Assembly (NCBI RefSeq): GCF_964188315.1
Contig: NC_135667.1
Location: 15,562,001 to 15,626,000 of the forward strand
DNA: 64,000 nt
Source of the DNA: Podarcis muralis
Lineage: Eukaryota
Direction: 5' to 3'
Each line of letters starts with the position of its first letter. Position 1 is the stretch's first letter. This document shows positions 13,518 through 56,900 of the stretch, piece by piece. The position numbers and the translations under genes were made by a program. Below the pieces are notes generated by a model. The model saw only the letters and a program-made list of their open reading frames with translations. It was not told where the DNA came from and searched no databases.

Positions 13518-13808
13518 GTTGTTTAGTCGTTTAGTCGTGACCGACTCTTTGTGACCCCCTGGACCAGAGCACGCCAGGCACTCCTGTCTTCCACTGCCTC
13601 CCGCAGCCTGGTCAAACTCATGCTGGTAGCTTCGAGAACACTGTCCAACCACCTCGTCCTCTGTTGTCCCCTTCTCCTTGTGCCCTCAATCTTTCCCAAC
13701 ATAAGGGTCTTTTCCAGGGAGTCTTCTCTTCTCGTGAGGTGGCCAAGGTATTGGAGCCTCAGCTTCAGGAACTGTCTTTCCAGTGAGCACTCAGGGCTGA
13801 TTTCCTTA
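13518..13808 (-). mobile_element. BovB (RTE) LINE 3' fragment
   Basis: gttgtttagtcgtttagtcgtg...cagtgagcactcagggctgatttcctt; near-duplicate of 36362-36650. Confidence 0.85.
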
Positions 13809-13889: not shown

Positions 13890-14170
13890 TCAGCTCCATT
13901 CAAGGTCCGCAATAAGGAACCTGTTTTTGGCCTTCAATGCCTTGTAGAGCTGATCCTTGCAATAGTGGTTCCAGCCAGGCACCAGCGTGTAAAGTTCCCT
14001 CATTTTTTCTTGGTTAGTTTCCCTTGAAGAGATTTTTTGGTACTGTTCTTCATCCAGGATTTGGCCGTGCAGCATATCCAGGACTGCTGCAACGTTGGTG
14101 GTCCGCTGGATCAGCTGTTCCCGATACTGTTCAATGAAATGGCAGTCAGAGGAGCTGGATGGCGGAGCAT
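13890..14170 (-). CDS. Gene A terminal CARD exon (ASC/NLRP1-type)
   Basis: HFIEQYREQLIQRTTNVAAVLDMLHGQILDEEQYQKISSRETNQEKMRELY...LIADLEWS*. Confidence 0.93.
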
Positions 14171-17100
14171 CTGTCAGACAAAAGAAGAACAATTCACATT
14201 TAAAGGGGTGGGGGAGGTTTAGAAGATGCTGCAAGAGACTGACCTCTGGTTACATGAGACCATATTATAGATTCCTACTGACCTTGTACTGAGTGGAAAA
14301 CAGAAGGCGTCAAGTCTTCTGAAAGGGGACAGAAAAGAGGGAAGTTAGACAAACTATGATTGGGATGTCCTTATCAATCCTTCATCTCAAGCTTTGGTCA
14401 AATCATGGAGTCCTTCCTTGTTCAAATGTTTAAAGGTGGCTAACCCAGAGTTACCCTGTCTGAAATTTGGCAATGTTCATCCCCTCATGTCTCCCAAGTT
14501 TCACCACCTATGTGAAATAACAAACAAACAAAAGGCTATAGCTCTTTTGGTTTCCAAATGTAGCAAATGAGATTTTTGAAGATTTGTTTTTTTCTGGATT
14601 GCAATTCAGATCAGGACTCCAGATTGGGTTGGGCCCGATCCATATTAATGTGAACTGAACCAGATGTGGATCACCAAGGTTGATCCTGAATTGTATTCCA
14701 GTTGGGTGTGTGTGTTGCATTGCCTTAGTATCTAGTATTAAATGCTTACTCTTTGCACCTATTGGGAAGAAGGATGGGATACAAGCACATACACAGGGGA
14801 AGTGAATAAACAATTAAAATAAATAAATAAAACTTACCCTGTGGTGGGGGCAGAACAGAAGAAGTCAACTCATCTGAAAGATAACAGAAAAAAGGAAATC
14901 AGAGGGGGAATGTGGCTGGGATGTCCTCCGTTAGCCTGCTTCCCAATGGATGGTCCAACCTTTTGTCCTCTCTCAATCAAAGCTCACCGTGTCGCACACA
15001 GGCCTTCCACACAAGTTCATCCTTCTTATTTATCAGGTTGAGCTCCAGTTCATCCTGCATGTGCTGAGCACACAGTTCAATGTACTGCTGTTTCATGTCT
15101 GCATTCAGGTAGTTTAACTTCAGTTCCTGTGAGAATGAGTGAAAGATGGACTTCTTTTCTGTTGAGCAGGACTAAAAAAATGGGAGGAAATTGCAAGGAA
15201 GTGGATTTTGGCAAAACTTTTTGGAAAACTTCCTAATGGTAACAGTTGTTACCATTGGGGCAGTGCCTTGGGAGGTGGTGGCCCCAACTTCACTGGCATT
15301 ATTTAAGAGGCTGCACAGTCATCTCCAAAGGGATTTAACAGGTATTTGCATCCTTCTTTGAAGAGCTTGCACTGGGCAGGGAGGTGGACTGTAGAGGCAG
15401 GTGGAAAAGATGACCCCAAAGTTCCTTCTGACTCTATGATTCTATGTGCAAATGTTGCTTAACCCATAGCTTTCCACCCAGCCCTCCATTCAAGAGGGTA
15501 AGCAAAAGGCTGAAGAGCTCTGAGCTGAGTTTCTCCTATTCTCATACCTCGCAGGCTAGGTACCCTCCCAGCAAAACCGTTCACCCTCTTCGTGCTGTAC
15601 CTTCGGATAGATTGTGACATCATCTAACTTCTGCACAAAGAAGCGAGAGCCAATCTTAAGAGGTTTCATGGTCACAGGATTTTTTTGCATTTTTCGTGAA
15701 TGGCACTTCACTTCATACTCATGGACAGCCTGGAACAAGCAAACAAAGTCACTTTTCAGACATTCAAAGAAGATGACAAACTGCTGGAGGACTTTCCAAC
15801 AAACTGAACTGGCAGAGGTTCAGATATTCTCTGGGTAAACACTTCCGAGACTAACAACATATAAGGAAAACTAGGTCACTTTGACACTCAATACTGAATC
15901 TTGGCCAATGGATTCCCTGTCTTTTTTCCACCATGGAATCCAAGAAACCACACATGCAGTTCCTAATTAACCACCCACCCAGGCACTGACCAAACCCTGA
16001 CCTGCTTGGCCTCAGCAAGATGATGGCTTCATATGCCTTCAGACCAGATCCTTGCTCTGATCAACAGGATCAAGCTAATCATCTTGTAAATTTTTGGAAC
16101 CTAGTAGAACTGGAGATTCCTGCTTACCTTTTTAAAGGAAGAGTCATTGGGGAGGAGGTACAGGTGGAATTTTGGAGCAGAGTTTTCCAGCTTTTCATAG
16201 AGCAGGGCCACAGCATGCACCTTTATCTTTTGCTTAAACCAAAACTTTTTGAAAACTGCTCCACAGGGAGATAACTTGGGGTTTTCCAACACAGCATGAA
16301 GTGGTCCCACTCTGGCTGGCTTCTGAAGACACATCATCCTACCGACAAAATGTGCTATGAGGACTTGGGAACCCTTTTTACCTATCAGAGGAAGGAATGC
16401 AAATAAAACACAGTTTAATAGTAGTTAGCCTGTAGACCCACTGCCCTAAGGTAGGCACCTAGTACTTACGACCTTTAGTTCACCCATTCCTGAAGACTCC
16501 AGAAGGTTCAAAATACTCTACACTGGAATGCTGTTATGCTGTTTCAAGTGATGGCTGACCATCAATTTATCCAGCCCTTTTTTTTTTTTTGGCATAACTG
16601 GCTTCCTTTTTTTGATAGCCTGTGATAATAGATGCTGCTTTATGTCTAGCACAGATTGTCTCAAATGAGCATCTGCTCTCTGTTGCCCAGATTCCAATAC
16701 TGTAAGACATGAACTGGCTCTACTGCAACAAGAAGTTCCTTAGCTGAGGCACTGCAGCAAAAGTGGGTATCCTCAGTCTTGGGGGCCAGAGATGGTCCTC
16801 TAGACTTCTCTGCCAGCCCCTTAGAACTCTCCTTCCACTAATCAACAGTTTTGTCTGGATTGAGATTCACTTTCTGCACCTACAATGGATCTGGCGGTCC
16901 TTGGAATAAAATAGCTGCAATTCAAATCACACAGCAGCATTTATTATCTGAATTGGTAGTAAGGAATGGAAACTAAAGTTCAAGGAGCATCTGCACGTCT
17001 TCCCATAATGCAAATCAAGAGCAGTGATTTACCAAGGTGGAAACCAGAAAACATGGGCTATAGACAGCAGAGGTATTTTGTCCTTGGAAGAGTGTGTAAA

Positions 17101-20100
17101 CACTGAAGAGGTGTATACTCAAGTTCACATGAACTATTCAACTAACATTTATTATTTATTAGATGTATATCCTGTCCTACCTCCCAAATGACTAATCTTT
17201 ACCCATTGAAATGAATTGACCCATTTGAAATGAATGGACCCTTTCGGTGGGTTTACTCTGAGTAAACGTTAGTCAAACCCAATGCTTGATGCTGATTTAT
17301 TGCCCTACTGTTCTCACAATCAAAATGGTTTAAGAGGGACAAGCATGTTACAAGTGGGGGAAAACAAGAGCTTAGGTTAGGAAGCCAAGTCTCCCTACTT
17401 CTCCCTCCCAACCCATGATAGTCAATCCCATTTAGGATTCTTGTTACAATGGTTATGGAAGCTTTCTCTTACCGTACCTGCAAGACACAAGAAGTGAGGG
17501 AGTTGAATAGCTGACACAGACTCGACTGGATCTGCTTGGATGTTGAGCAAAGGGCCGGCAACCATCAACTTCCATGCATCCCTCCTGTTCAGGTGTTTAG
17601 GCCATGAGTCAAATTGGTATGTGATGGTCACAGCTCCCCTCACCTCAAATATGAGATCAGTATAACAGCAACGGAAAGAGCCAGCCTCAGTAAAGCATAC
17701 CCTGAAAGCAAGCAAGAAAAAGTCAGATGGGGAAGGGGGTGGAACACATTCCTTTGCTGTTAAGAGAAATCATAACTATTGTCCTATGTGCTTGCTTGGT
17801 AAAACATATGTAGTAAAAGTTTAACACTGCCTGAAATTTGTGGTTATTCATCCTTGGTTTTCCTGCATCTGATATAGTAGCTGACCCACAGCTTCCTTGA
17901 AATACAGTAGATCTTGGTCACTGCTACTGATCTGCCACATAAATGTGCAGCTACATATGTAACCTGGGTGTGCTTTAGAGAACACCAACATTTATAATGA
18001 TTGCGAGACCCACATGAGGCGAGTCTACAGAACATTCCCTAGAAGGTAGGCTGAAAAATGTGTGAGATAAATTACTCACTTGTAGGATGCATGATTCCCT
18101 TGTAAATCCAGAACAACCTCTGGGTTGATTTTTCCTGGAAGTGCCTTTAACAAAGCAGTAATGATTAATATTGATGCCAATGCACACCCACACACCCACA
18201 CCCAATCTCATCTGAAAATAAGAATGTCCTTCTTCCCCAAAATCCTCAACAGGCAGTTTAGTGTAGGAGACATTCCATGAAGGTGGGCTGAATTTGAAGA
18301 ATTCCACTACAAGCTGAATGTACATTGATTAAAACATGTTAAAGCACCAGAAAAAAAGTGTGGATTTCAAATTGATAACATTCAGTGGACCGTCTGTAAA
18401 ATGTGAATAGGACTGATGATTCTACCCCCTAAACTAGAATCACAGTGTGATAGTCCAGAAAGTCAATTGCAATTCTATTTACTTCCATTGCCAACTGTAT
18501 GGAAACTGCTTTACCACTATCTATTGACACACACACAAACCAACACCAACGGCTCTAAAAGGTGTGGGATGTATTATTACTAGAGCAGCCAAGTACAACA
18601 TTTTCCTGTTGCCTAGAATGGACACACAGAGGAATGTGGCTCCCAGACAGAGAGGACTTCCTGTCATACCTGCTCTGGAGCTTCCTGCCCTTGTGTGTGA
18701 CCAGGTAGATGGGCATGGCCCTAGCTGACCAGATACAAGGGCTGGCCACCCAACCATCTCTCTCTTGGACTCCTGCTCTCCTGGCTCTCAGCCAACACAT
18801 GGCTCAACCTTCACATAGGATGGAGCCCAAAAGCCCACTGTAACCACTAGATAAAGCCTGCCTTCAGATTACTGCTGTGAACTGAATGTGAGCAAAACTT
18901 TATTCTTACTTTTAAAGAAGACTGTGTTGTGTTGTTATTATTTTAAGTGGGAAATAAAGTGGAAACTTACCAACAACAATCCAGACTGGACAAGGCAGAC
19001 TGGATTGCTTAATTAAATGATTCTAACGAATCATCAACTTGCTTCCAATAAAGTGCAAAGGGATTCCCCCCCCTTCCTTTTGTTTTCTCACTAGCGTGAG
19101 GAGGGATAATATCAAAAGTATATATCCTCTCCTACCTTCCTTAACATTCCCACAAACAGATTACTTTCCACAGTAAACTTGAATTTCAAGTTTGGTAGAT
19201 TCACCTTGAAAGTATCCATGTATTCCTCATTCCTGTGGGTGGTAATGCAAATTAGATTGAGTCCAGTCCCTTACCTTACTGGGACACCTGCTACACAGGA
19301 CACTTCCCCCAAAATCTGCAGTCTCATCTGTCTGACTACTGCTTTCTTCTTCTACAAACTGGGGTTTTTTCTCACCGCAGCACTGAGTGGGCAGGAATCT
19401 GGATTGAAATTTGATTCCACTCTGTAAAATAAGGACAATTATTTATAATCCCACATAGCTGTACTGTGAACGAAGGAGAAATTTCATTGTCCTTGAGGAT
19501 TAGGAAGAACCCTAAACCAAACTCACCTTGTGCTGCATTTTGTACGACCGCCTTTGTCTCCAATTGTCCATTTCTACGCATTCCACAAATTGGTGACAAG
19601 ATTTCATACCCCTTTCCTCAGTTCTAATCGGCAATTTGTGACCTTTCTCACATTCTTCGAAAATGTGTCCTGGGTCCTTTTCAGGAATTTTCCATAGATG
19701 TTTCCTTCCCGTGTGGATCATCTCATCACTAGACATTGTGACATTTTGCAAATTACCTGTTGTAGAAACGTTTGTTTGCTTGTTTGTTTGTTTTGACATC
19801 AGCAGAAAAAGAACGAGAACCTCAACAGGGTATGAGAAGCTTCCCTATACTGGATCCTACCGCTTGCCTGCCTAATTTCCCAGGGCCAACTTTCAAGGTC
19901 AAGTGACTCTCCAAGGCGGCAGATAGAGGCAAGTCTTTCCTAGCCCTGCTTGCTATTTTTCAAAAATAACTGTTGCAAAGGAAGGTTGAGTAAGAAAGTG
20001 TTCTTCAGAATAATGCATAGAAGAGAGATACAATATATTCGAAATGTCGTCCCTGCTGTTTAATGCCCATGTCGAGATGATGCAATGGAATAATGAAAGT

Positions 20101-20572
20101 GAGAAGGAGCGCAAAGCGGGGGATATAGGAAGAGAGGCAGGGGATTCCCAAGTCGTCCCTCCAATTTTGTCGCCACGCGCTTGTACAGCTGGACCCCGGG
20201 AAGCAAACCTCCCCTCTCCCGGCCAACGTTTCCATAGGAGATCCGGGCGAAGCAACGGCTCCCCTTCCCGAGGTCCTTACCTTGCCTGCTGCGGAGGCGC
20301 TTGTCCGCCTGGCGCCGGCCGTCGATGGTGCTCCGCGCCTCGGGCGCCACCTCCACGGCGCTGCTCTCGCAGGTGTGGCGGAGCAGCTCGACCGGGAACT
20401 TCTCCAGCTCGCCCTCCTCGGAGCGCGCCGGGGTGAGACTCAGGGGGCCACGGCTGGCGCCACGGAGCAAGCGGAGACTTGGCGGCCGAGATGCTCTGCA
20501 GGAGCGGAAGGAATCCTCTTCAGAGAAGCACCCGTCCCCAGCGCAGCTCAGAAAACATTTCACCGACAGCAT
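13890..20572 (-). CDS. Gene A: deleted-PYD - deleted-CARD - CxxC linker - FIIND - CARD protein (NLRP1/CARD8-like), ~610 aa
   Basis: Exons 20572-20281, 19756-19527, 19421-19275, 18144-18080, 17701-17478, 16381-16128, 15729-15601, 15126-14988, 14873-14838, 14318-14283, 14170-13890; all GT-AG, phases compatible, 1833 nt. Confidence 0.82.
14988..15729 (-). CDS. Gene A FIIND UPA exons (15729-15601, 15126-14988)
   Basis: AVHEYEVK...KPLKIGSRF and ELKLNY...ELVWKACVRH align with the NLRP1 UPA. Confidence 0.88.
16128..16381 (-). CDS. Gene A FIIND exon with autocleavage region (ENPKL-SPCG)
   Basis: IAHF...LQKPARV...HAVLENPKLSP...FHLYLLPNDSS vs NLRP1 MAHF...LEKPARV...ENPSFSP...FHLYLIPSDCS. Confidence 0.92.
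17478..17701 (-). CDS. Gene A FIIND ZU5 exon
   Basis: EAGSFRC...MVAGPLLNIQA...LPHFLCL vs NLRP1 VAGSYRW...MVAGPLLDIKA...LPHFVAL. Confidence 0.92.
18563..19154 (+). mobile_element. Older solo LTR related to the TGTGGGA family, in gene A intron 3
   Basis: tgtgggatgt...aataaa...aacattcccaca. Confidence 0.65.
19527..19756 (-). CDS. Gene A exon 2: CARD homologue with ~22-aa internal deletion
   Basis: SDEMIHTGRKHL...ERGMKSCHQFVECVEM aligns at both ends with the gene C CARD SDEMICKGREQL...ERGEQACCRFLECLEM. Confidence 0.75.
20281..20572 (-). CDS. Gene A exon 1: PYD homologue with ~29-aa internal deletion
   Basis: ELEKFPVE|LLRHTCESSAVEVAPEARSTIDGRRQADK vs gene B ELKKFKGEL...LLRHYDVDGAVEVAAKVLKAIDCQPQADK; same donor position. 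Confidence 0.72.
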
Positions 20573-21562
20573 TCCCCCCCACCCAAAGGCCCTGCAAGAG
20601 CGGCTTCCTTCTCCTTAACGGGCTACTTCCACATCCCTCGGGCGGGGAAGCTCTGCGCGGGTTTGTGGCCTCTCCCAGCCGCCTTCCCTGCCCGCTTCAG
20701 TCGCTCGCCCCGTCGAAGCCCCGAGAGGCAGAGCCCCGCTTCAGACACCAGGGGACTCGACGGCGGGGATGGAGACCGCGATTGCCGCGGATCGCTCCTG
20801 CCCGACCCCTGCGCTTAAGCAGGTGCGCAGTCTCTGCCAGGACGCCGAAGCCTGCTGGAGGCTTTCTGCGACGTTTCGGTTTCTCTCCTTAGCACGCGAC
20901 TTCCTCATCCTTTGTGCTGGGATCTTGAGACTCTCGCCTTCCCTGCCTCCCGCCCCCAATCGCCTGGGGAACCAGAGGAGCATTTTCGCTTCAGACACCA
21001 GCAGACTCGACGGCGGGGACGAGATGGCCTGAAGGGCTTTTTCTTCCCGCTGCTCTCTCTTTTCCGCCCCCGCCCAGCCGTGCGCTTCGGCAGGCGCGCA
21101 AGTTGCGCGGCTTAGGACTCTGAAGTCTGCTTAAGCTTTTCTGAGAGAGGTTTTTCCTACATTGTGGTAGAAGGGAAGGGGTTTCTTGTCCCCGGGATCC
21201 AAAGCTGGGAGAAGGCCGGGGGAAAGCGGGAGGAAGGGACAGGACGCAGCAGGTGGTTGAGCAACTGCAGCGCGATGCAGGTGGGGAGGGGGACCCACAC
21301 CGTGCTGATAAATGAATTTTTCAGCCTCATAGAGGTTCATTTGAAAATAAGAAATAAAACCTTTAGTGTCTTCCGCCCAGAGATTCAGGCACCTTCTGTG
21401 CCAACTTTTAAACCCCTTCTGAAAACTGTTCTATTCTTCCTGGCCTATGCAGGAAATTAATGATCCTTCCATAATGGTTAAGCGATGTCTGGTTTTAACT
21501 TCTCTCTCTCTCTTTTGCATAGTTTTGCTGCTGTAAACCACTTTGCTATATTGTGCATTAAT

Positions 21563-34337: not shown

Positions 34338-36142
34338 CTCTTTGATAACACAGGCATCCTGACATGGATAAATCAAAGTGGGGAAATGGAAACGAGATGA
34401 TCTGAAGAGGGGTGGAACCCACAGCAATTTGCAATTTTGCTGTAAATTTTCATTGTTTATCTCATACTATAAATTCCTATTTATTCTATATTGAAAGTCA
34501 GACCTGATTACAAGTAGAAACCCCGATGAAACTACTTCTAACCTAGTAAAAGACATCTGCTCTTGGTCACAGGAGAAAACTGTGTCTGTTTGAGATCACT
34601 GGTTGTGTGCACCCATGTGTATTTGTAGTGTCATTTTTCAAAATAATTGCAAAGAAGGGGAAATGAATAAAGCATGAAAGAGGAATTGAGAGCTACAATG
34701 CAAAGATGATAAATAATGTTATTCTTGCCATTTAATGTCCATGTTGAAACGATGTGAAGAAATAATGTGAGGTGGAGGAAGGGCAAAGAGGGGCATTAAA
34801 AACTGCTTGAGGGTTGTTGGTTTTTTTACAACCAACTGAGGTATAAATTTTATGCAATAAAATAATATAAATATAGGAAGAGAGACCTGCGATTTCTGAG
34901 TCCTCCCTCCAATTGGTTAAGACACACTGAGAATGTAAATAATAAGTTTATGACAAACACGACCCAGCTAAAGAAACCTCTCTTCCTCCAGCCAACATTT
35001 CTTCATGAGGAGATAATCAGGCTCAAACAAATGTTCCCCTTTCCGAGGTCCTTACTTGCCCTTCCACGGAGAAGCTTGTCCGCCTGCGGCTGGCAGTCGA
35101 TGGCCTTCAGCACCTTGGCTGCCACCTCCACGGCACCATCCACATCATAGTGTCTGAGCAGCAGATGGCAGAGAGTCCAAGCACCACATTCCTGCAGCCA
35201 GTCCTGGGTGACCTGGAGATCGCCCATCGGAATGGAGAAATGGCAGAGTTCGCCCTTGAACTTTTTTAGCTCGGACTCATCTAAACTCTCCAGGGTGCAC
35301 GCCAGGAGACCATAGATGGCTCTAATATAGGTCAAATGGTGACCTGATAGCAGAAATGATTTCATTGGGAGCCCAGAATCCTTTTCAGAAGAGCTCCCAG
35401 GATGAACCTCAGGGGCCAGAGACTTCTCCAAGCACAGGGTACTGCAATTCCCCACCTGGATGCCTGAAAGGAAGCGGTTTTCTCTCCCAGAGTTCAAGTC
35501 ACCATAGATGTCAGCAGGTTTGTAGGCATCATTGGTGACGTAAGGGTTGTATCCTTCAAAGCCCAGAGCACCGAACAACGGGAAGTGTATTTGCCTCAGC
35601 TGGACTCTTGGCCTTTCAGAGTCATAAGTGCCAGAGAGGTATCCTTCAAGGTCTAGGGCATCCTCCGAGAAGATGTGTTTTTTTCTCCGCAACGCGCGTC
35701 TCCCCTTCCAAAAGGAAGTAACATCCCATTTGCCATCACAGACGCAATCCACAGGCTCCAGGGGATCCGCCGAGGGGGAGCAGACCTCCTCCCCCATTGC
35801 GCCCTGCCCCCCCACAGTCTCTGGGGCGTTCACGGAACGACTATAGACGGGGAGGATTTGGTGCCGCCGCGTCCACAGCATTCCACCGCCTGTGCTCAGA
35901 GATCTTCCAACGGCCCTGACCGACTCCTCTCTCCTTACCGGGCTGCTACTTCCTCTTCCCTCGGGCAGAGAAGCTCTGCGCCGATTTCTGTCCTCTGTCT
36001 GTGGGCCGCCCGCCCGCATTCTCGGTCGCGTGGCGTGTCGCGTCCGTAGAGAAGGAACCCCGCTTTCGACACCAGCGGACTCGACGGCGGGGACGGAGCC
36101 CGCGATTGCCGCGAGCACGTTCGAAGGGGCGTCTTCCTGCAT
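28433..36142 (-). CDS. Gene B: N-terminal extension - PYD - CxxC linker - FIIND - CARD protein, ~765 aa
   Basis: Exons 36142-35056, 33980-33907, 32860-32796, 31199-30976, 30360-30107, 29661-29533, 29371-29230, 29136-29107, 28725-28433; all GT-AG, phases compatible, 2298 nt. Confidence 0.86.
29230..29661 (-). CDS. Gene B FIIND UPA exons (29661-29533, 29371-29230)
   Basis: TVHEKEEK...KPLRIGSRF; ELELQY...ELIWEAFVRQ. Confidence 0.88.
30107..30360 (-). CDS. Gene B FIIND exon with autocleavage site (NPKF-SSRG)
   Basis: IGHF...LEKPSRV...NPKFSS...FHLYLLPNDSS. Confidence 0.92.
30976..31199 (-). CDS. Gene B FIIND ZU5 exon
   Basis: EAGSFQC...VAGPLLNIQA...FPHFLCL. Confidence 0.92.
31376..31989 (+). 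mobile_element. Intact 614-bp solo LTR
   Basis: TGTGGGATGT...AATAAA...ACATTTCCACA; exact 5-bp TSD gctgt. Confidence 0.88.
33553..33796. mobile_element. Tc1/mariner (Tigger-like) MITE; related copies near 22270, 42324-43455, 54563-54794
   Basis: TIR cagtggtacc/ggtaccactg flanked by TA. Confidence 0.8.
35056..36142 (-). CDS. Gene B exon 1: ~275-aa extension plus PYD
   Basis: 1087-nt open exon ending in LACTLESLDESELKKFKGEL...AVEVAAKVLKAIDC; phase-1 donor A|GTAAGG. Confidence 0.8.
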
Positions 36143-36361: not shown

Positions 36362-36770
36362 CAGCTGTCGTTTAGTCGCGTCCGACTCTTCGTGACCCCC
36401 CTGGACCAGAGCACGCCAGGCACTTCTGTCTTCCACTGCCTCCCGCAGTTTGGTAAACTCACGCTGGTAGCTTCGAGAACACTGTCCAACCATCTCGTCC
36501 TCTGTCGTCCCCTTCTCCTTGTGCCCTCCATCTTTCCCAACACCAGGGTCTTTTCCAGGGAGCCTTCTCTTCTCATGAGGTGGCCAAAGTATTGGAACCT
36601 CAGCTTCACGATCTGTCCTTCCAGTGAGCATTCAGGGCTGATTTCCTTCAGAATGGAGAGGTTTGATCTTCTTGCAGTCCATGGGACTTTCAAGAGTCTC
36701 CTCCAGCACCAGAATTCAAAAGCATCAATTCTTCTGCGATCGGCCTTCTTTATGGTCCAGCTCTCACTTC
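36362..36770 (-). mobile_element. BovB (RTE) LINE 3' fragment
   Basis: SILKEISPECSLEGQIVKLRFQYFGHLMRR...GRQRTRW is a BovB ORF C-terminus. Confidence 0.9.
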
Positions 36771-52100: not shown

Positions 52101-53856
52101 TATGTCCACTACTCATCTTCCACAGCGATGTGCACCCACAGGGGCAAGCAGAGTATGCCTAGAGAGCATCACAATGTGGGAGCATCACCATATCCATATG
52201 CAATGCAGAAAACATTCTCTGATGGAAGTACTACTCGCCTGTAAGTTTCATGGCTCCTTTGTGAATCCCAAACTTTCTCTGGTCTTATCTTTCCTGGAAG
52301 CTCCTATAACAAAGAATAAAGGGTCCGAATTGATACCATATTCCTCCTCCTATCTGAAAATAAGAACACCCACTATGACCACATCAAGGATCCCTTCTTG
52401 AGCTCCACTCCACAGCTCCACATTGCTAAAAGCTCTTTATACCTGCTGCATTCTGTATTCATTTTTAGTATAGTAATTAGACCTGTGCTGAATTCTGAAA
52501 TACTGTGTGAACTGCTGATCCATTAAAAAAAACAACTTTAAAAGAAGATATAATCTTCCAAAATATCTCATTATGGTGATTATAGCATGGCTGCAACCCA
52601 AACATCCATTAACATTTCATCCCCAAGTACTGATGAGGGGGAAGAAGGGTACACTGTGGGTTGGCACTTGGTGTCCATCCATACCAGATTCTCCCACTCT
52701 CCTTTCACCCAGAGAATTATTTCTGGAGACAACTGTGGACATGGCAATATTGGAAAGTACTGTACCACAATGCATGCAAATGAAGAAACATTTAAGCAGG
52801 AGGATTGAAATGTAACAAACAGCTGGACCCCCCACAAAATATGAGTGAGATTCCACACTAAACTAGAAACACAATGTGATAAGTGCCCTTTGTCCACTTG
52901 CCATGGTTTATTAGCACATGGAGCCCCCTGTTTTGATGCAGCCAGTACAACCCTTACCTCGCTGGGACACTGGATGCACATGACGCTTTCTCCAGGATCT
53001 TCAGAATGCTCCATTTTCTGGTTCCTCGTTTCCTTTCTGAATAGGAGGGATTCAGACTGCAGCACTGACTGGTCAGAAACCTGGACTTTATTTTTAAACC
53101 AATATGACTGTTGTGAAAATGAAGAAAGGTGCAAAAAATGACCTTGAGGAATAAGAATGACGTGAAGTCAAATCCACCCAGTACTGCAAATAGCAGGATC
53201 CGAACAGAAGCCGGACGTACCATTTCTAAACATTCCAGGAACCGACAACAAGCTTGTTCTCCCCTTTCCAGGATTATACTTAGCAATTTTTTGATTTTCT
53301 CTTTAGAATCTTTCTCCATTTTGAAAACATTCTTGTATTCTTGTAGTGTGATGACAGAGCAAGAGTGTAGGGTGTGCAAAACGAAGTCTAGGTCCTCTTC
53401 AAGAATTTCAATCAACTGTTCTCTTCCCTTGCAGATCATCTCATCACTAAAGAATGCGTATCTTTTCAACGACCTGTGGCAGAAACAGAAGCAGGGGAAG
53501 AACTGGAACCTGGTTAGGTGGCCAACTTGCAGCCAGTGGACCATCGGTAGCTCTCAGCTGCACACCCTGGGGCCCACCAAGACTTGGGGAACCTTGCCTT
53601 CTTTTCTTAGCCTTAAGCTGTGCAATTTCACCATCAATTTCACCTGGTGTGCCAGCAGGTGAAGAGGGAGCTAAAAGCGTACGTGTGAAATGAGCGGAGG
53701 GGAAAGTGGTGTGTGCAAGAGAGAGTGGGAATGAGAATTGTGAAGGTGGGTGTGTCTGTGCACATATCTGAGCAAGTGTGCAGCCCCCAACACACTACTC
53801 ACCTGCACACACAACCCTCAGGGATAAAAAGATTGCCCTGCTGTCCCCTATTCTAG

Positions 53857-53915
<59 letters not shown>

Positions 53916-56900
53916 ATTTATACCCTGTCCATCTGGCTGGGTTTCCCCAGCCACTCTGGGCAGCTCCCAAGAGAATATTAAAAACATGATAAAACATCAA
54001 ACATTAAAAACTTCCCTAAACAGGGCTGCCTTCAGATGTCTTCTAAAAGTCAGATAGTTGTTTATTTCCTTCCTTGACATCTGATGGGAATCTATTAAAA
54101 AGACTCCCTCGAATATCCTCCCAGCAACCCCAGTCAGTTCTTATCTTTAGTCCTTATCTTAGCATTATTATCTTTATATGGGCAGGATGGGGGAGGCTGA
54201 GAAACAGTCCACACAGTGGTTTCGTTGTAGAGGCAAGATCTGACTCGGACTTCCCTCTTTCACAGCTCACTATATTCCAGCGGCTCTGCACCTTTATGGT
54301 TGTGGAGTGAGGCTGGCTTGAAAAGTATCTGGCAGCCTGACAGCTTCAGCAGAAAATATGCACTTTGGTTTTACTGCCCAACGGTTGACTTAGAAAGTCA
54401 TCTGTGGGCAGGAAAGGGAAAGGTTCAACATGGTGATTTGAAAAATATTCTTTCTTCCAAGCAGCCTTTTCCTTTAAAAAGCACACACGAAATTAGTAAA
54501 TTGGCGCTAAAGCATTTATTTGTTTTAAGCAGAAGAGCTTGCTAAATTACTTATAATGTTTACAGTGGTACCTCGGGTTAAGTACTTAATTCGTTCCGGA
54601 GGTCCGTTCTTAACCTGAAACTGTTCTTAACCTGAAGGACCACTTGAGCTAATGGGGCCTCCTGCTGCCGCCGTGCAATTTCTGTTCTCATCCTGAAGCA
54701 AAGTTCTTAATCCGAGGTACTATTTCTGGGTTAGCAGAGTCTGTAACCTGAAGCGTATGTAACCTGAAGTGTATATAACCTTGAGGTACCACTGTGTGTG
54801 TGTGTGTATATATTTCAGATATATACGTTTCACTGATTTTACAATCATTTTGACATTTAAAAAATTTACTTCCTTCCCCTTCTTCATGCAGTTCCTTAAA
54901 TTTATTTTTAATATTTTCTGCATATCCAGATTAACTTAACTTACTCATTTATTTATCTTCTTTATATATATACTCTTATGTAGCTGCAGGTTGTTACAAT
55001 AATCCTGCCAGTGTTTTTATCTGTTTACAATTTATCTGTAAATATTCAATGAACCATTTCCATTCTTTTATATAAAAAAGTTTGTTATCTTGGTTTCTTA
55101 CTCTTCCGGTAAGTTTCTCCATTTCTGCATATTCCATAAGTCTTTGTATCCATTCTTCCTTTGCTTGGACTTCTTCTTCTTTCCATTTTTGGGCAAGTAA
55201 CATTCTTGTCATATAATGTTTAAAATTGAAGTGTTTTGCATTGAGAGTGTAGTTTGCTGTAGTGTTAACTGAGAGGGGAAAACACATTGCTAAAATGGTG
55301 GCTTCAGTCACTTAAGTAAAGTGTAGAAATTACCCTTTAGTGGCTCTTTCTGATGAAAGCAGTTCCTCCAGACCTTGAATAATTTTTGAAGACAATACTA
55401 CAGCTGTCCGATGCCTTGAAACATGCTTTTCAGGGGGTTGCTCTGCTGTTAGATATATTGAGAAAGTGAGTACACATAAACAGTTTTAGTTAATCAAACC
55501 CATGGCCTAGCTGAAGTTCTGCCAGAACCTTCAGGGCCAGGAGGCATATGTAAGCAGAGGGGAAGGGATAATATTGTTCTGAAGTGATGGCATTGATTTT
55601 ATAAAATCATTGTGAAACTTGAAGAGATACTGATTTCAGAGTCTTCCCTCCGATTTTGTCCAGAATACATATTCAGAATGCTGCACAGATTTGAGACACA
55701 CCCAAAGCCCTTCCAAGAAGCTTCCTTTACACCCAGCCCCACTCCTAGAAGAAGACCATCAGACTCAGCCAATGTTCTCCCTTCCAAGTTCCTTACCTTT
55801 CCCGATGAGACGAAAGAGCCATTCTGGCAAGGGCTCACATTCAATGGCCTTCAGCACCTCTGACACCACCTCCACAGAATAATCCTCAGCACAGTATGTA
55901 AGCAGCAATTCTGTGAGCTCCCAAAGATTTGCTTCCTCCAGCAACCCCTTGGGGATACTGACATAGCCTTCCTTGAAGGGGAACACGCTGAGTTTATCCT
56001 TGAACTTCTTCAGATCTGACTCCTTCAAGGTTTTCAGGGTGACCAGCAGGCATAGATGTGTAATCCTTACTGTTGGAATTATTGGTGTTAGTAGCAGTAT
56101 TGAACAGAAAAAACCCAGCCTACATTCCCCTTCCCCTTCTCTTCCTGTTGGAAAACCTTGAATAGGTAGCACTAAGTGGGAAAGGGCCGTGGATCAGTGG
56201 TAGATCACATGCATACAAAGGATCCCAGGTTGAATCCCTGGAATCTCCAGATAGGGCTGGGAAATATTCCTGCCTAAAACCTTGGAATGAGCTGGACCAA
56301 CTGGTCCAATGTGCCCTAAGGCAGCTTTCCATCTTTCTATGATTTCCAATGATTCCAGCAATTCAGCCTGACTCAGAAGACAGAAAAAACTCCAAGGGGG
56401 TTAGGAAGGCCTGAAGACTCTCTTAATTTACACGCCTCTTCTTAGCTATTTGCAGGCTTCAAACATGAAGGAAAGAAGACTGCATTCCACAAGGAAAAAT
56501 CTGAACCCCAAGTCCAAAGGACCACAAGAAATTCATGTAAACTGTTTCTTTGCTGTTCTCTGCATCCTAAGATGAAGATACCGTATTTGCAATTTATTAA
56601 GCATTGGCAAGGGACACAGGTGGCGCTGTGGGTTAAACCACAGAGCCCAGGACTTGCCGATCAGAAGGTCAGTCGTTCGAATCCTCACGACGGGGTGAGC
56701 TCCCATTGCACAGTCCCAGCTCCTGCCAACCTAGCCGTTCAAAAGCACGTCAAAGTGCAAGTAGATAAATAGGTACCGCTCTGGCGGGAAGGTAAATGGC
56801 GTTTCCGTACACTGCTCTGGTTTGTGAGAAGCGGCTTAGTCATGCTGGCCACATGATCCGGAAGCTGTACCCCGGCTCCCTCGGCCAATAAAGCGAGATG

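Follow-up and report, generated by a model that had tools for sequence, protein, structure and literature searches.

A conserved CARD8-like paralog of lacertid lizards with remnant PYD and internal CARD exons and altered FIIND processing residues

Gene A and its eleven exons

In our study, the window was the whole analysed stretch of 64,000 nucleotides of Podarcis muralis DNA (contig NC_135667.1, positions 15,562,001 to 15,626,000), and gene A was located on its minus strand at 13890–20572. It belongs, as a paralog conserved in lacertid lizards, to a local CARD8-like family (PYD-CARD-FIIND-CARD). It was found to contain 11 coding exons with consistent phases; the acceptors were all AG, the donors were all GT and none of the 11 exons contained a stop codon. 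The stretch 19527–20572 extends from the last base of exon 2 to the ATG. Among the paralogs, gene B is a PYD-FIIND-CARD gene annotated as "CARD8-like" in P. muralis, and gene C, P0026, P0010 and P0027 are of the PYD-CARD-FIIND-CARD type. The exons of gene A were collinear with those of the cluster paralogs at 70–80% DNA identity, and the linker, FIIND and CARD exons were common to all. In the FIIND tree, the group that contained gene A also contained gene B and a protein of Rhineura. Among the proteins retrieved in the ortholog look-ups, none was a P. muralis product of gene A, and the P. lilfordi ortholog (P0052) was used as a stand-in for the full-length protein.

Exon 1 (20281–20572; 97 codons and 1 nt; 69% GC) contained the PYD remnant and the start codon (20572–20570). 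It was placed by DNA alignment to the PYD exon of gene B, by protein alignment, by RNA contigs and by the ATG and frame kept in four species. The gaps in the DNA alignment to the gene B exon totalled 87 nt (29 codons). In the protein alignment with the five intact PYDs of the window, a single block of 29 residues was missing, which we take to begin late in helix 2 and extend through most of helix 4 (ASC numbering). Exon 2 (19527–19756; 2 nt and 76 codons) contained the remnant of the internal CARD and was placed by alignments to gene C and the other paralogs and by an RNA joint. When it was aligned with the gene C exon for the internal CARD and with the intact internal CARDs of four lacertid paralogs, 22 residues were missing in one block. 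Gene A has lost the GT at the position inferred as the gene C donor, and its own exon 2 donor is found 14 codons further downstream. The internal CARD exon is absent from gene B, whereas gene A keeps its remnant.

The Pfam models PYRIN (PF02758) and CARD (PF00619) gave no match to exons 1 and 2 at E<=1, and residues 1–225 of the P. lilfordi ortholog gave no Pfam match at E<=10. The descent of the two exons from PYD and internal CARD exons was recognised in their DNA similarity (E 1e-21 and 4e-7, respectively); because this similarity is accompanied by an exon order collinear with paralogs B and C, the homology of the remnants is not due to chance. The gutted structure was present in four species. 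The earlier note had reported a PYD shortened by about 29 aa, a CARD shortened by about 22 aa and 11 exons, and the alignments and the exon map gave exactly these three counts. Its claim that both N-terminal death folds were destroyed in an intact gene also stood, as the Pfam searches and the frame and splice sites kept in four species indicate.

Exon 3 (19275–19421) encoded a linker of 49 codons, and the models of P. lilfordi and P. raffonei contain it as well. Owing to compensating indels, the frame of its first half differed from that of paralogs B and C, and the shared frame was regained before the 'CPSK' end. Exon 4 (18080–18144) contained the start of the ZU5 part of the FIIND and matched residues 114–136 of the P. 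raffonei NCBI model (P0029), followed by exon 5 (17478–17701) with the ZU5 core, which ended in 'LPHFLCLA' (Pfam FIIND, E 7.5e-27). Exon 6 (16128–16381) ran from the last part of ZU5 across the processing site into the beginning of UPA and was supported by RNA joints on both sides and by HMMER residue equivalences. Exon 7 (15601–15729), with an A7 run at 15680–15686, encoded the middle of UPA, and exon 8 (14988–15126), with AG/GT splice sites in four species, its last part. Exon 9 (14838–14873) and exon 10 (14283–14318) were two mini exons of 36 nt each in the UPA-CARD linker; the protein models of P. lilfordi, P. raffonei and L. agilis all include both, and AG/GT splice sites flank them in four species. 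Exon 11 (13890–14170) contained the C-terminal CARD (Pfam CARD, E 2.6e-15) and the stop codon (13892–13890). In the P. lilfordi ortholog, Pfam recognised FIIND (3.9e-39), UPA-FIIND (1.2e-20) and CARD (1.5e-14). Gene A contained the ZU5-UPA FIIND followed by a C-terminal CARD that defines the FIIND-CARD class.

An RNA contig of run X4 joined 20281|19756 (exon 1|exon 2); the joint fell precisely on the predicted sites and had GT..AG borders on the minus strand. Exons 1 and 2 were transcribed and spliced together, as the earlier note's interpretation requires. Exon 1 was covered by an X1 contig at 20393–20558 and by an X4 contig at 20277–20383. The joints of exons 5|6 (ZU5|UPA; 16381|17478) and 6|7 were seen in X1 and X4, and loose contig ends of both runs at 15600 read on into the first bases of exon 8. 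The RNA contigs stopped short of the ATG, and the joints between exons 2, 3, 4 and 5 were not seen in them. The k-mer depth on gene A was 3–7 in two small RNA runs. The bulk RNA run X17 (1.9 Gb) contained almost no gene A reads, which indicates low expression in that sample only.

Frame and selection in four lacertid species

Both gutted exons recurred, with the start codon and frame kept, in P. raffonei, Lacerta agilis and P. lilfordi, where the protein is annotated at 607 aa. Throughout the 11 exons of the four species, 20/20 splice sites were canonical and neither frameshifts nor stop codons were found. The frame was also free of frameshifts in a second P. muralis individual, and the earlier note's account of an intact frame was upheld. 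The orthologs of gene A formed one clade with 100% support in the FIIND tree. As the sequences of the four species show, the in-frame deletions of the PYD and CARD are older than the Podarcis-Lacerta split and have been stable since. The gene had been described as a snapshot of an evolving sensor, which does not suit a state that is old and stable.

The ATG was conserved in four species, with a purine at -3 in every copy. The 100 nt upstream of the ATG were 94% identical across all four species and homologous to transcribed gene B sequence, which suggests that the gene A transcript starts further upstream. The P. lilfordi annotation begins at this ATG, and P0029 of P. raffonei begins at the exon 2 Met; the models available for P. 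raffonei and L. agilis were all partial or split.

All of the coding indels (6/6) were multiples of three, against 27% of the intron indels. At the intron rate, about 15.3 frameshifting indels were expected in the coding exons of gene A and 0 were observed (P about 2e-7). In exons 1–3 the numbers were 5.6 expected and 0 observed (P 0.0035). Exon 1 alone, where about 2.5 frameshifts were expected and none was seen (P about 0.08), gives weak evidence; both of its indels were 3 nt long. The pN/pS on the four-species tree was 1.14 in exon 1, 0.41 in exon 2, 0.64 in exon 3, 0.47 in the FIIND and 0.20 in the CARD, and the difference between exon 1 and the CARD had a Fisher p of 0.039. Exon 1 changed at the intron rate and was the sole part of gene A at a neutral rate. 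Purifying selection acts on the FIIND and above all on the C-terminal CARD of exon 11, where constraint is strongest in the gene. The dN/dS comparison proposed in the earlier note was answered in part: exon 1 followed the neutral rate, exons 2 and 3 had the lower ratios given above, and no frameshifts were found.

A pN/pS near 1 in exon 1 was dropped as a proof of lost constraint, since the intact PYD of gene B had 7 nonsynonymous and 1 synonymous changes between P. muralis and P. raffonei. The open frame of exon 1 was likewise dropped as evidence of coding, since at its GC content long open stretches were found in all three frames. A word search with this open frame matched no protein and was uninformative.

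The FIIND processing site and the DPP9-binding strand

The residue equivalences of the FIIND were obtained from the HMMER alignment of P0052 to human NLRP1 (6x6c) and CARD8 (7jkq). The catalytic triad of the FIIND is E1195/H1186/S1213 in NLRP1 (PMC9700037); the triad Glu is E1195 in NLRP1 and E279 in CARD8, and the P1 Phe is F1212 and F296, respectively. The residues Q337, L354 and S355 of P0052 corresponded to E1195, F1212 and S1213 of NLRP1, and R332 to E274 of CARD8. In exon 6 of gene A, the catalytic His was kept (16352–16350), the triad Glu was substituted by Gln (16325–16323), Arg was present at the position of CARD8 E274 (16340–16338) and the processing site was Leu|Ser in place of Phe|Ser (16274–16269). 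The substitutions of Glu by Gln and of the P1 Phe by Leu were found in all four species; Podarcis retained the catalytic His and Ser, and in L. agilis the nucleophile Ser was substituted by Tyr. In a survey of 41 FIINDs, Phe was present at P1 in 37/41 and the Glu in 36/41; P1 Leu was found only in the gene A orthologs, and the same orthologs held 3/4 of the Gln. The paralogs, in contrast to gene A, have intact PYDs, internal CARDs intact where present, and the canonical Phe|Ser site with Glu.

Judged by these residues, gene A does not have the Glu/His/Ser triad and P1 Phe of an autoprocessing site. The NLRP1 mutant F1212A is unable to autocleave (bioRxiv 10.1101/2020.10.14.325076; PMC7483925). 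By analogy with this mutant, in which Phe is changed to Ala and not to the Leu of gene A, autoprocessing of gene A was probably lost. As L. agilis has lost the Ser and its gene is intact, the conservation of the gene is independent of cleavage. The strand that binds DPP9 (CARD8 K272–E279) contained Arg at E274 and Gln at E279 in gene A, and M276 and L278 were kept. In human CARD8, E274R abolishes the binding of DPP9, and a FIIND that cannot be cleaved keeps the free C-terminal fragment repressed (bioRxiv 10.1101/2021.01.13.426575).

The first, dead FIIND of gene C (Phe|Tyr, and Lys in the place of the triad Glu) is altered yet conserved, as is that of gene A; gene C has a second, cleavable copy, whereas gene A has a single FIIND per protein. 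The engineered uncleavable FIINDs (CARD8 S297A; NLRP1 S1213A and F1212A) resemble gene A in their changed cleavage determinants and differ from it in that Podarcis retains the Ser. CARD8 FIIND-S297A uses a DPP9-dependent route, and the Arg of gene A at the E274 position argues against that route.

The predicted disordered leader and the possible roles of gene A

In the AlphaFold model of P0052, residues 1–212 were mostly below pLDDT 50, whereas the FIIND reached 76–95 and the CARD about 97. In the model of the intact paralog P0026, made from the same 41-sequence alignment, the PYDs and the internal CARD reached 80–92. The N-terminus of gene A is predicted to be a mostly disordered leader of about 220 residues. 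The largely unstructured PYD-CARD remnant expected by the earlier note was found in this prediction, and by the same prediction gene A has the unfolded N-terminal region of at least about 160 aa that is characteristic of CARD8. Low-confidence helices were still drawn at residues 56–97 and 108–119 of P0052, and some residual structure is therefore possible. A charge-hydropathy (Uversky) test per exon did not separate folded from unfolded parts and was dropped, since it placed even the genuine CARD among the "disordered" parts.

We consider that there is about an even chance that gene A encodes a modulator of the FIIND-CARD type that is conserved, carries a disordered leader and probably stays uncleaved. 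In-frame deletions removed the cores of the PYD and CARD before Podarcis and Lacerta split. The leader is transcribed and spliced in frame, and in this reading it would be tolerated as a translated spacer, with an open frame as its only detectable requirement. The FIIND has lost conserved determinants of self-cleavage and the protein would stay a single uncleaved chain, so that no UPA-CARD fragment would be released on N-terminal degradation. Through its conserved UPA-CARD it would most likely modulate the cleavable sensors B and C nearby, or caspase-1/ASC, and could do so by capping or sequestering, in the way of engineered uncleavable FIIND constructs and CARD-only proteins. CARD-only proteins act as brakes, and a CARD-bearing protein unable to polymerise could do likewise. 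The modulator role is drawn by analogy from human engineered mutants only. By the same analogy, the Arg at the E274 position would preclude DPP9-dependent repression and leave only DPP9-independent modes (UPA-UPA or CARD-CARD); a DPP9-dependent brake as the single mechanism was set aside for this reason.

The earlier note took the leader for an unstructured bait. In such a model the FIIND would still autoprocess at Leu|Ser, and proteasomal degradation of the leader or a cut by a pathogen protease would free UPA-CARD as in CARD8. The order of a disordered N-terminus, FIIND and CARD equals that of CARD8, whose activation needs the disordered N-terminal ~160 aa (PMC7594595), and the leader is in frame and fast-evolving like known tripwire regions (PMC10249858). 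The retained His and Ser of Podarcis and the strongly conserved C-terminal CARD are also consistent with such a sensor. Against it, no gene A ortholog has the P1 Phe or the triad Glu that are near-invariant among the 41 FIINDs, NLRP1 loses its autocleavage through F1212A (bioRxiv 10.1101/2020.10.14.325076), and L. agilis keeps the whole gene intact without the nucleophile Ser. The kept frame is explained equally well by the need to translate into the FIIND-CARD; it shows a need for read-through only and is not evidence of a bait role. The CARD8-like layout stands, and the altered autoprocessing residues (Gln and Leu, and Tyr in L. agilis) argue against the mechanism. We regard the bait as unlikely. 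It is similarly doubtful that lacertids reached the CARD8 layout independently through decay of the PYD and CARD, with Podarcis still autoprocessing as a degradation or protease tripwire.

The remaining alternatives concern whether exon 1 is translated and whether the gene is being lost. If transcription started downstream of 20572, or translation at the exon 2 Met as in P0029, the PYD remnant would be 5' UTR and the protein would begin with the CARD remnant. The intron-rate change of exon 1 with its pN/pS of 1.14, its 69% GC with long open stretches in three frames, the RNA contigs that span 20277–20558 without the ATG and the weak frameshift test of exon 1 alone agree with this. We nevertheless consider it quite unlikely, as the ATG with its -3 purine is kept in four species, the two indels are each 3 nt, exon 1 is spliced in frame into exon 2 in four of the four species, the P. 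lilfordi annotation begins at the ATG, and the sequence upstream is 94% identical and homologous to transcribed gene B sequence. Gene A might also be dying slowly, with the lost death folds and FIIND catalytic residues as steps of pseudogenisation and the frame as a leftover. Such a course could account for the neutral rate of exon 1, the lost catalytic residues, the low expression, the partial or split models of P. raffonei and L. agilis and the P. muralis protein missing among those retrieved. The A7 run of exon 7 also read A8 in one X1 contig, and the extra A would shift the frame; this was a single low-depth contig at a homopolymer, and the extra A was absent from X4 and from the DNA run X11. 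The lack of frameshifts and stop codons in 11 exons of four species, where about 15 frameshifts were expected, the pN/pS of the CARD and FIIND, the canonical splice sites and the spliced RNA make a dying gene very unlikely. In its frame, splice sites, CARD constraint and spliced RNA, gene A does not have the marks of a pseudogene.

In human CARD8 the parts follow each other as in gene A: an N-terminus in which no domain is folded, the FIIND with ZU5 and UPA, and the CARD at the C-terminus. The ortholog of P. lilfordi matched the CARD8 chain 7jkq_B over residues 239–604 (E 8e-43) and NLRP1 6x6c (E 4e-64). CARD8 autoprocesses at F296|S297 with H270 and E279, whereas gene A contains Leu|Ser (Leu|Tyr in L. 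agilis) and Gln at the E279 position; E274 of the DPP9-binding strand of CARD8 is Arg in gene A. The leader of gene A, unlike that of CARD8, can still be recognised as the product of one PYD exon and one CARD exon. The gain and loss of N-terminal parts in FIIND-CARD sensors is still an unsolved matter in inflammasome evolution, and the disordered N-terminus of human CARD8 is essential for function and obscure in origin. In gene A, two recognisable death-fold exons appear to have become an unstructured leader in which selection keeps the frame only, a state stable in at least two lacertid genera. Gene A offers a natural test of whether the P1 Phe and triad Glu matter outside mammals, and of whether an uncleaved FIIND-CARD protein can be a dedicated regulator of neighbouring sensors. 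Should gene A prove to cleave after all, it would represent convergence on CARD8. If it acts as a tripwire, it would give a direct view of a CARD8-type sensor arising from a PYD-CARD-FIIND-CARD ancestor, and L. agilis with Leu|Tyr would be a natural loss-of-cleavage comparison.

The PYD-then-CARD order of ASC (PYCARD) is like that of the ancestral N-terminus of gene A. Compared with ASC, the N-terminal PYD and CARD of gene A are non-functional remnants, and a full FIIND lies between these remnants and the functional CARD. The C-terminal CARD of gene A matched ASC CARD structures at E about 3e-21.

Structure of gene A and its shortened exons

Gene A occupied 20572–13890 of the minus strand, with its exons collinear with those of the paralogs B (about 28.4–36.1 kb) and C (about 40.5–58 kb). 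It contained 11 coding exons, all on the minus strand: exon 1, a PYD remnant (20572–20281); exon 2, an internal CARD remnant (19756–19527); exon 3, a linker (19421–19275); FIIND exons at 18144–18080, 17701–17478, 16381–16128, 15729–15601, and 15126–14988; two mini exons of 36 nt (14873–14838 and 14318–14283); and the CARD exon (14170–13890). The phases were compatible, all acceptors were AG and all donors GT, and no stop codons were found in the 11 exons checked. Frame continuity was followed by phase arithmetic for each exon, and the natural ortholog of P. lilfordi (P0052) was used as the full-length stand-in.

Against the PYD exon of gene B, the gaps in the DNA of exon 1 totaled 87 nt. In the alignment with five intact PYDs of the window, exon 1 lacked one 29-residue block, which in ASC numbering we take to run from the end of helix 2 through helix 3 and across most of helix 4; the part aligned with helix 1 contained prolines. 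Exon 2, aligned with the gene C exon for the internal CARD and with the corresponding domains of four lacertid paralogs, was 22 residues short. The losses of about 29 and 22 residues in a gene of 11 exons, as claimed in the earlier note, were thus exact. The donor of exon 2 lay 14 codons 3′ of the inferred gene C donor position, where the GT was lost in gene A. No Pfam PYRIN or CARD match was found in exons 1 and 2 at E ≤ 1, nor any Pfam match in the first 225 residues of P0052 at E ≤ 10.

AlphaFold2 modeling of P0052 with a 41-sequence alignment gave a pLDDT of about 25–31 across most of residues 1–212, with low-confidence helices at 56–97 and 108–119, against 76–95 in the FIIND and about 97 in the CARD. 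The intact paralog P0026, modeled with the same sequences, reached 80–92 on its two PYDs and internal CARD; therefore, the low values are specific to the remnants and are not an effect of a shallow alignment. The prediction supports a largely disordered N-terminus, as had been proposed.

The first half of exon 3 (19340–19421) was read in a frame different from that of paralogs B and C, through a 4-nt loss near the acceptor that was compensated later, and the exon end (…CPSK) was in the shared frame; the shifted reading was kept in all four species compared below. Intron 3 contained high-copy repeats (18452–19240), where the depth of the DNA run X11 was 300–1290 vs. about 15 elsewhere, and a repeat at 13526–13807 was 92% identical to 36367–36648. 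In the 100 nt directly 5′ of the ATG (20601–20700), 94% of the columns were identical among the four species, compared with only 86–88% in exon 1; this conserved stretch may belong to the 5′ UTR or to a promoter. Positions 20583–20789 were homologous to 35907–36113 of gene B.

Transcription and orthologs

The RNA evidence came from two small P. muralis runs behaving as RNA (X1 and X4). One X4 contig joined 19576–19752 to 20277–20383, and given a 4-nt ambiguity the joint was exactly 19756|20281, flanked by GT..AG in minus-strand orientation. This shows that both exon 1 and exon 2 are transcribed and are spliced to each other, against the possibility that they are not transcribed. An X1 contig lay within exon 1 (20393–20558), the joints 17478|16381 and 16128|15729 were present in both runs, and loose contig ends at 15600 ran on into the start of the following exon. 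No RNA contig reached the ATG or spanned the exon 2-3-4-5 joints. The RNA depth of gene A was low in both runs, and the bulk RNA run X17 had almost no reads on the gene.

One X1 contig (depth 6.7) contained an additional A in the A7 run of exon 7 (15680–15686, minus strand), which was absent from the X4 RNA and the X11 DNA. A genuine insertion would make this a frameshift allele whose product lacks the CARD and the final UPA exon; slippage or misassembly at the homopolymer would be another explanation. Other X1 contigs, wholly or partly in introns (15832–16037 and 17291–17477), may stem from unspliced transcripts, from retained introns or from DNA in the library.

A word search seeded by the gene B PYD, and next by a P. 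lilfordi FIIND protein, yielded 48 FIIND proteins of reptiles, birds, and mammals. P0029 of P. raffonei matched the gene A exons at ~90%, and its cluster held three more proteins: P0052 of P. lilfordi (607 aa, full length, with the same exon 1 Met and the same 11 exons), P0051 of Lacerta agilis (a partial protein), and P0050 of P. raffonei, the CARD end of the ortholog annotated separately as "ASC". The three ortholog loci were collinear with the window at 89–95% identity. The 11 exons, ATG, frames, and all splice sites were intact in all four species (P. muralis, P. raffonei, P. lilfordi, and L. agilis), and the shortened exons 1 and 2 were common to them. The gutting is therefore older than the Podarcis–Lacerta split, a stable state instead of the snapshot of an evolving sensor seen in the earlier note. 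No indels, and hence no frameshifts, were found inside exons 1–2 in X11, the DNA of another individual or haplotype; exon 1 there contained one synonymous and one Ala-to-Ser change, and one additional base was present just 5′ of the ATG.

The orthologs were annotated in part: the P. lilfordi one as a hypothetical protein, those of P. raffonei and L. agilis as split or partial "NLRP1-like" models. At the P. raffonei locus (L001, 10001–16692), NCBI has two models for one ortholog: a 352-aa "NLRP1b allele 5-like" from the exon 2 Met into the intron after exon 7, and a 153-aa "ASC" built from the last exons. Since the DNA has all 11 exons intact and in frame, the split appears to stem from an annotation error or from an alternative end of the transcript. 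Protein searches found no P. muralis protein for gene A; gene B was a 100% match over 363 residues to the P. muralis protein P0003 ("CARD8-like isoform X2"), on which ground we take the window, which is vertebrate DNA, as P. muralis. No paper on gene A was found, and lizards receive only a passing mention in a review of the inflammasome gene repertoire (PMC11258412).

Substitutions and indels

Intron divergence was 0.034–0.074 across species pairs. By parsimony counts on the four-species tree, pN/pS was 1.14 in exon 1 (24 nonsynonymous and 7 synonymous), 0.41 in exon 2, 0.64 in exon 3, 0.47 in the FIIND, and 0.20 in the CARD (exon 1 vs. CARD, Fisher p 0.039). Exon 1 thus evolves at a neutral rate. 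This alone is no proof of lost constraint, because the intact PYD of gene B differed between P. muralis and P. raffonei by 7 nonsynonymous changes and 1 synonymous one. The indels gave the stronger signal. Among 83 short indels in the introns (11.3 per kb), 27% were multiples of three, compared with six of six in the coding sequence. At the intron rate, 15.3 frameshifting events would be expected over the complete coding sequence (probability of zero about 2e-7), and 5.6 over exons 1–3 (P 0.0035). Therefore, the N-terminal exons are held open, with the sequence of exon 1 free to change. From the open frame it follows that translation has to pass through this region, but not that the region has a function of its own. 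Among the parts of the gene, exon 1 alone evolved at the neutral rate.

Cleavage site and possible roles

By HMMER alignment to human NLRP1 (6x6c) and CARD8 (7jkq), residues H328, Q337, L354, and S355 of P0052 were equivalent to NLRP1 H1186, E1195, F1212, and S1213 and to CARD8 H270, E279, F296, and S297; R332 was equivalent to CARD8 E274. The catalytic triad of the FIIND (NLRP1 E1195, H1186, and S1213) has been described (PMC9700037). In the FIINDs surveyed, Phe at P1 was found in 37 of 41, Glu in 36, and Ser in 38. Leu at P1 was limited to the three gene A orthologs in this alignment, which also hold three of the four Gln, and P. muralis gene A has the same residues. The NLRP1 mutant F1212A "cannot undergo auto-cleavage" (bioRxiv 10.1101/2020.10.14.325076); PMC7483925 lists it as deficient in autoproteolysis. 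In the L. agilis ortholog, Tyr replaced the nucleophile Ser at the site equivalent to 16271–16269 (Leu|Tyr), a replacement shared with gene C's dead first FIIND (Phe|Tyr), and all 11 exons were intact. In the FIIND tree, the gene A orthologs formed a clade with 100% support and a long stem, adjoining gene B and a Rhineura protein. Gln and Leu arose on this stem and, by parsimony, Tyr is a later change in Lacerta.

The earlier note took the gutted N-terminus for an unstructured bait and gene A for a CARD8-like sensor. CARD8 itself uses a disordered N-terminus in this way (PMC7594595, PMC10249858), and the predicted disorder agrees with it. However, a CARD8-type mechanism needs a cleaved FIIND, and it is disfavoured because gene A has lost two near-invariant determinants and one species lacks the nucleophile; yet the gene is conserved as a whole, the CARD most of all. 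We therefore regard the bait as unlikely. That exon 1 is untranslated seems somewhat less likely still, and a slow death of the gene is improbable.

The simplest account, to which we would give an even chance, is a single-chain, uncleaved FIIND-CARD protein. CARD or UPA contacts would let its conserved part modulate either the cleavable sensors encoded nearby or caspase-1/ASC, and the disordered leader would be tolerated as a spacer. A CARD8 FIIND made uncleavable by S297A binds DPP9 and keeps the free C-terminal fragment repressed, and CARD8 E274R abolishes DPP9 binding (bioRxiv 10.1101/2021.01.13.426575).

In gene C (53221–53520 and 55768–56172), the PYD exon ends in phase 1, and both candidate internal-CARD acceptors break the frame, with a stop within a few codons; one additional base at this place in gene A brings the PYD and CARD into frame. 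In gene B (35366–36142), the P. muralis and P. raffonei models put about 260 residues of long open frame before the PYD; this could be a true extension or an open frame that arises from the GC-rich sequence alone.
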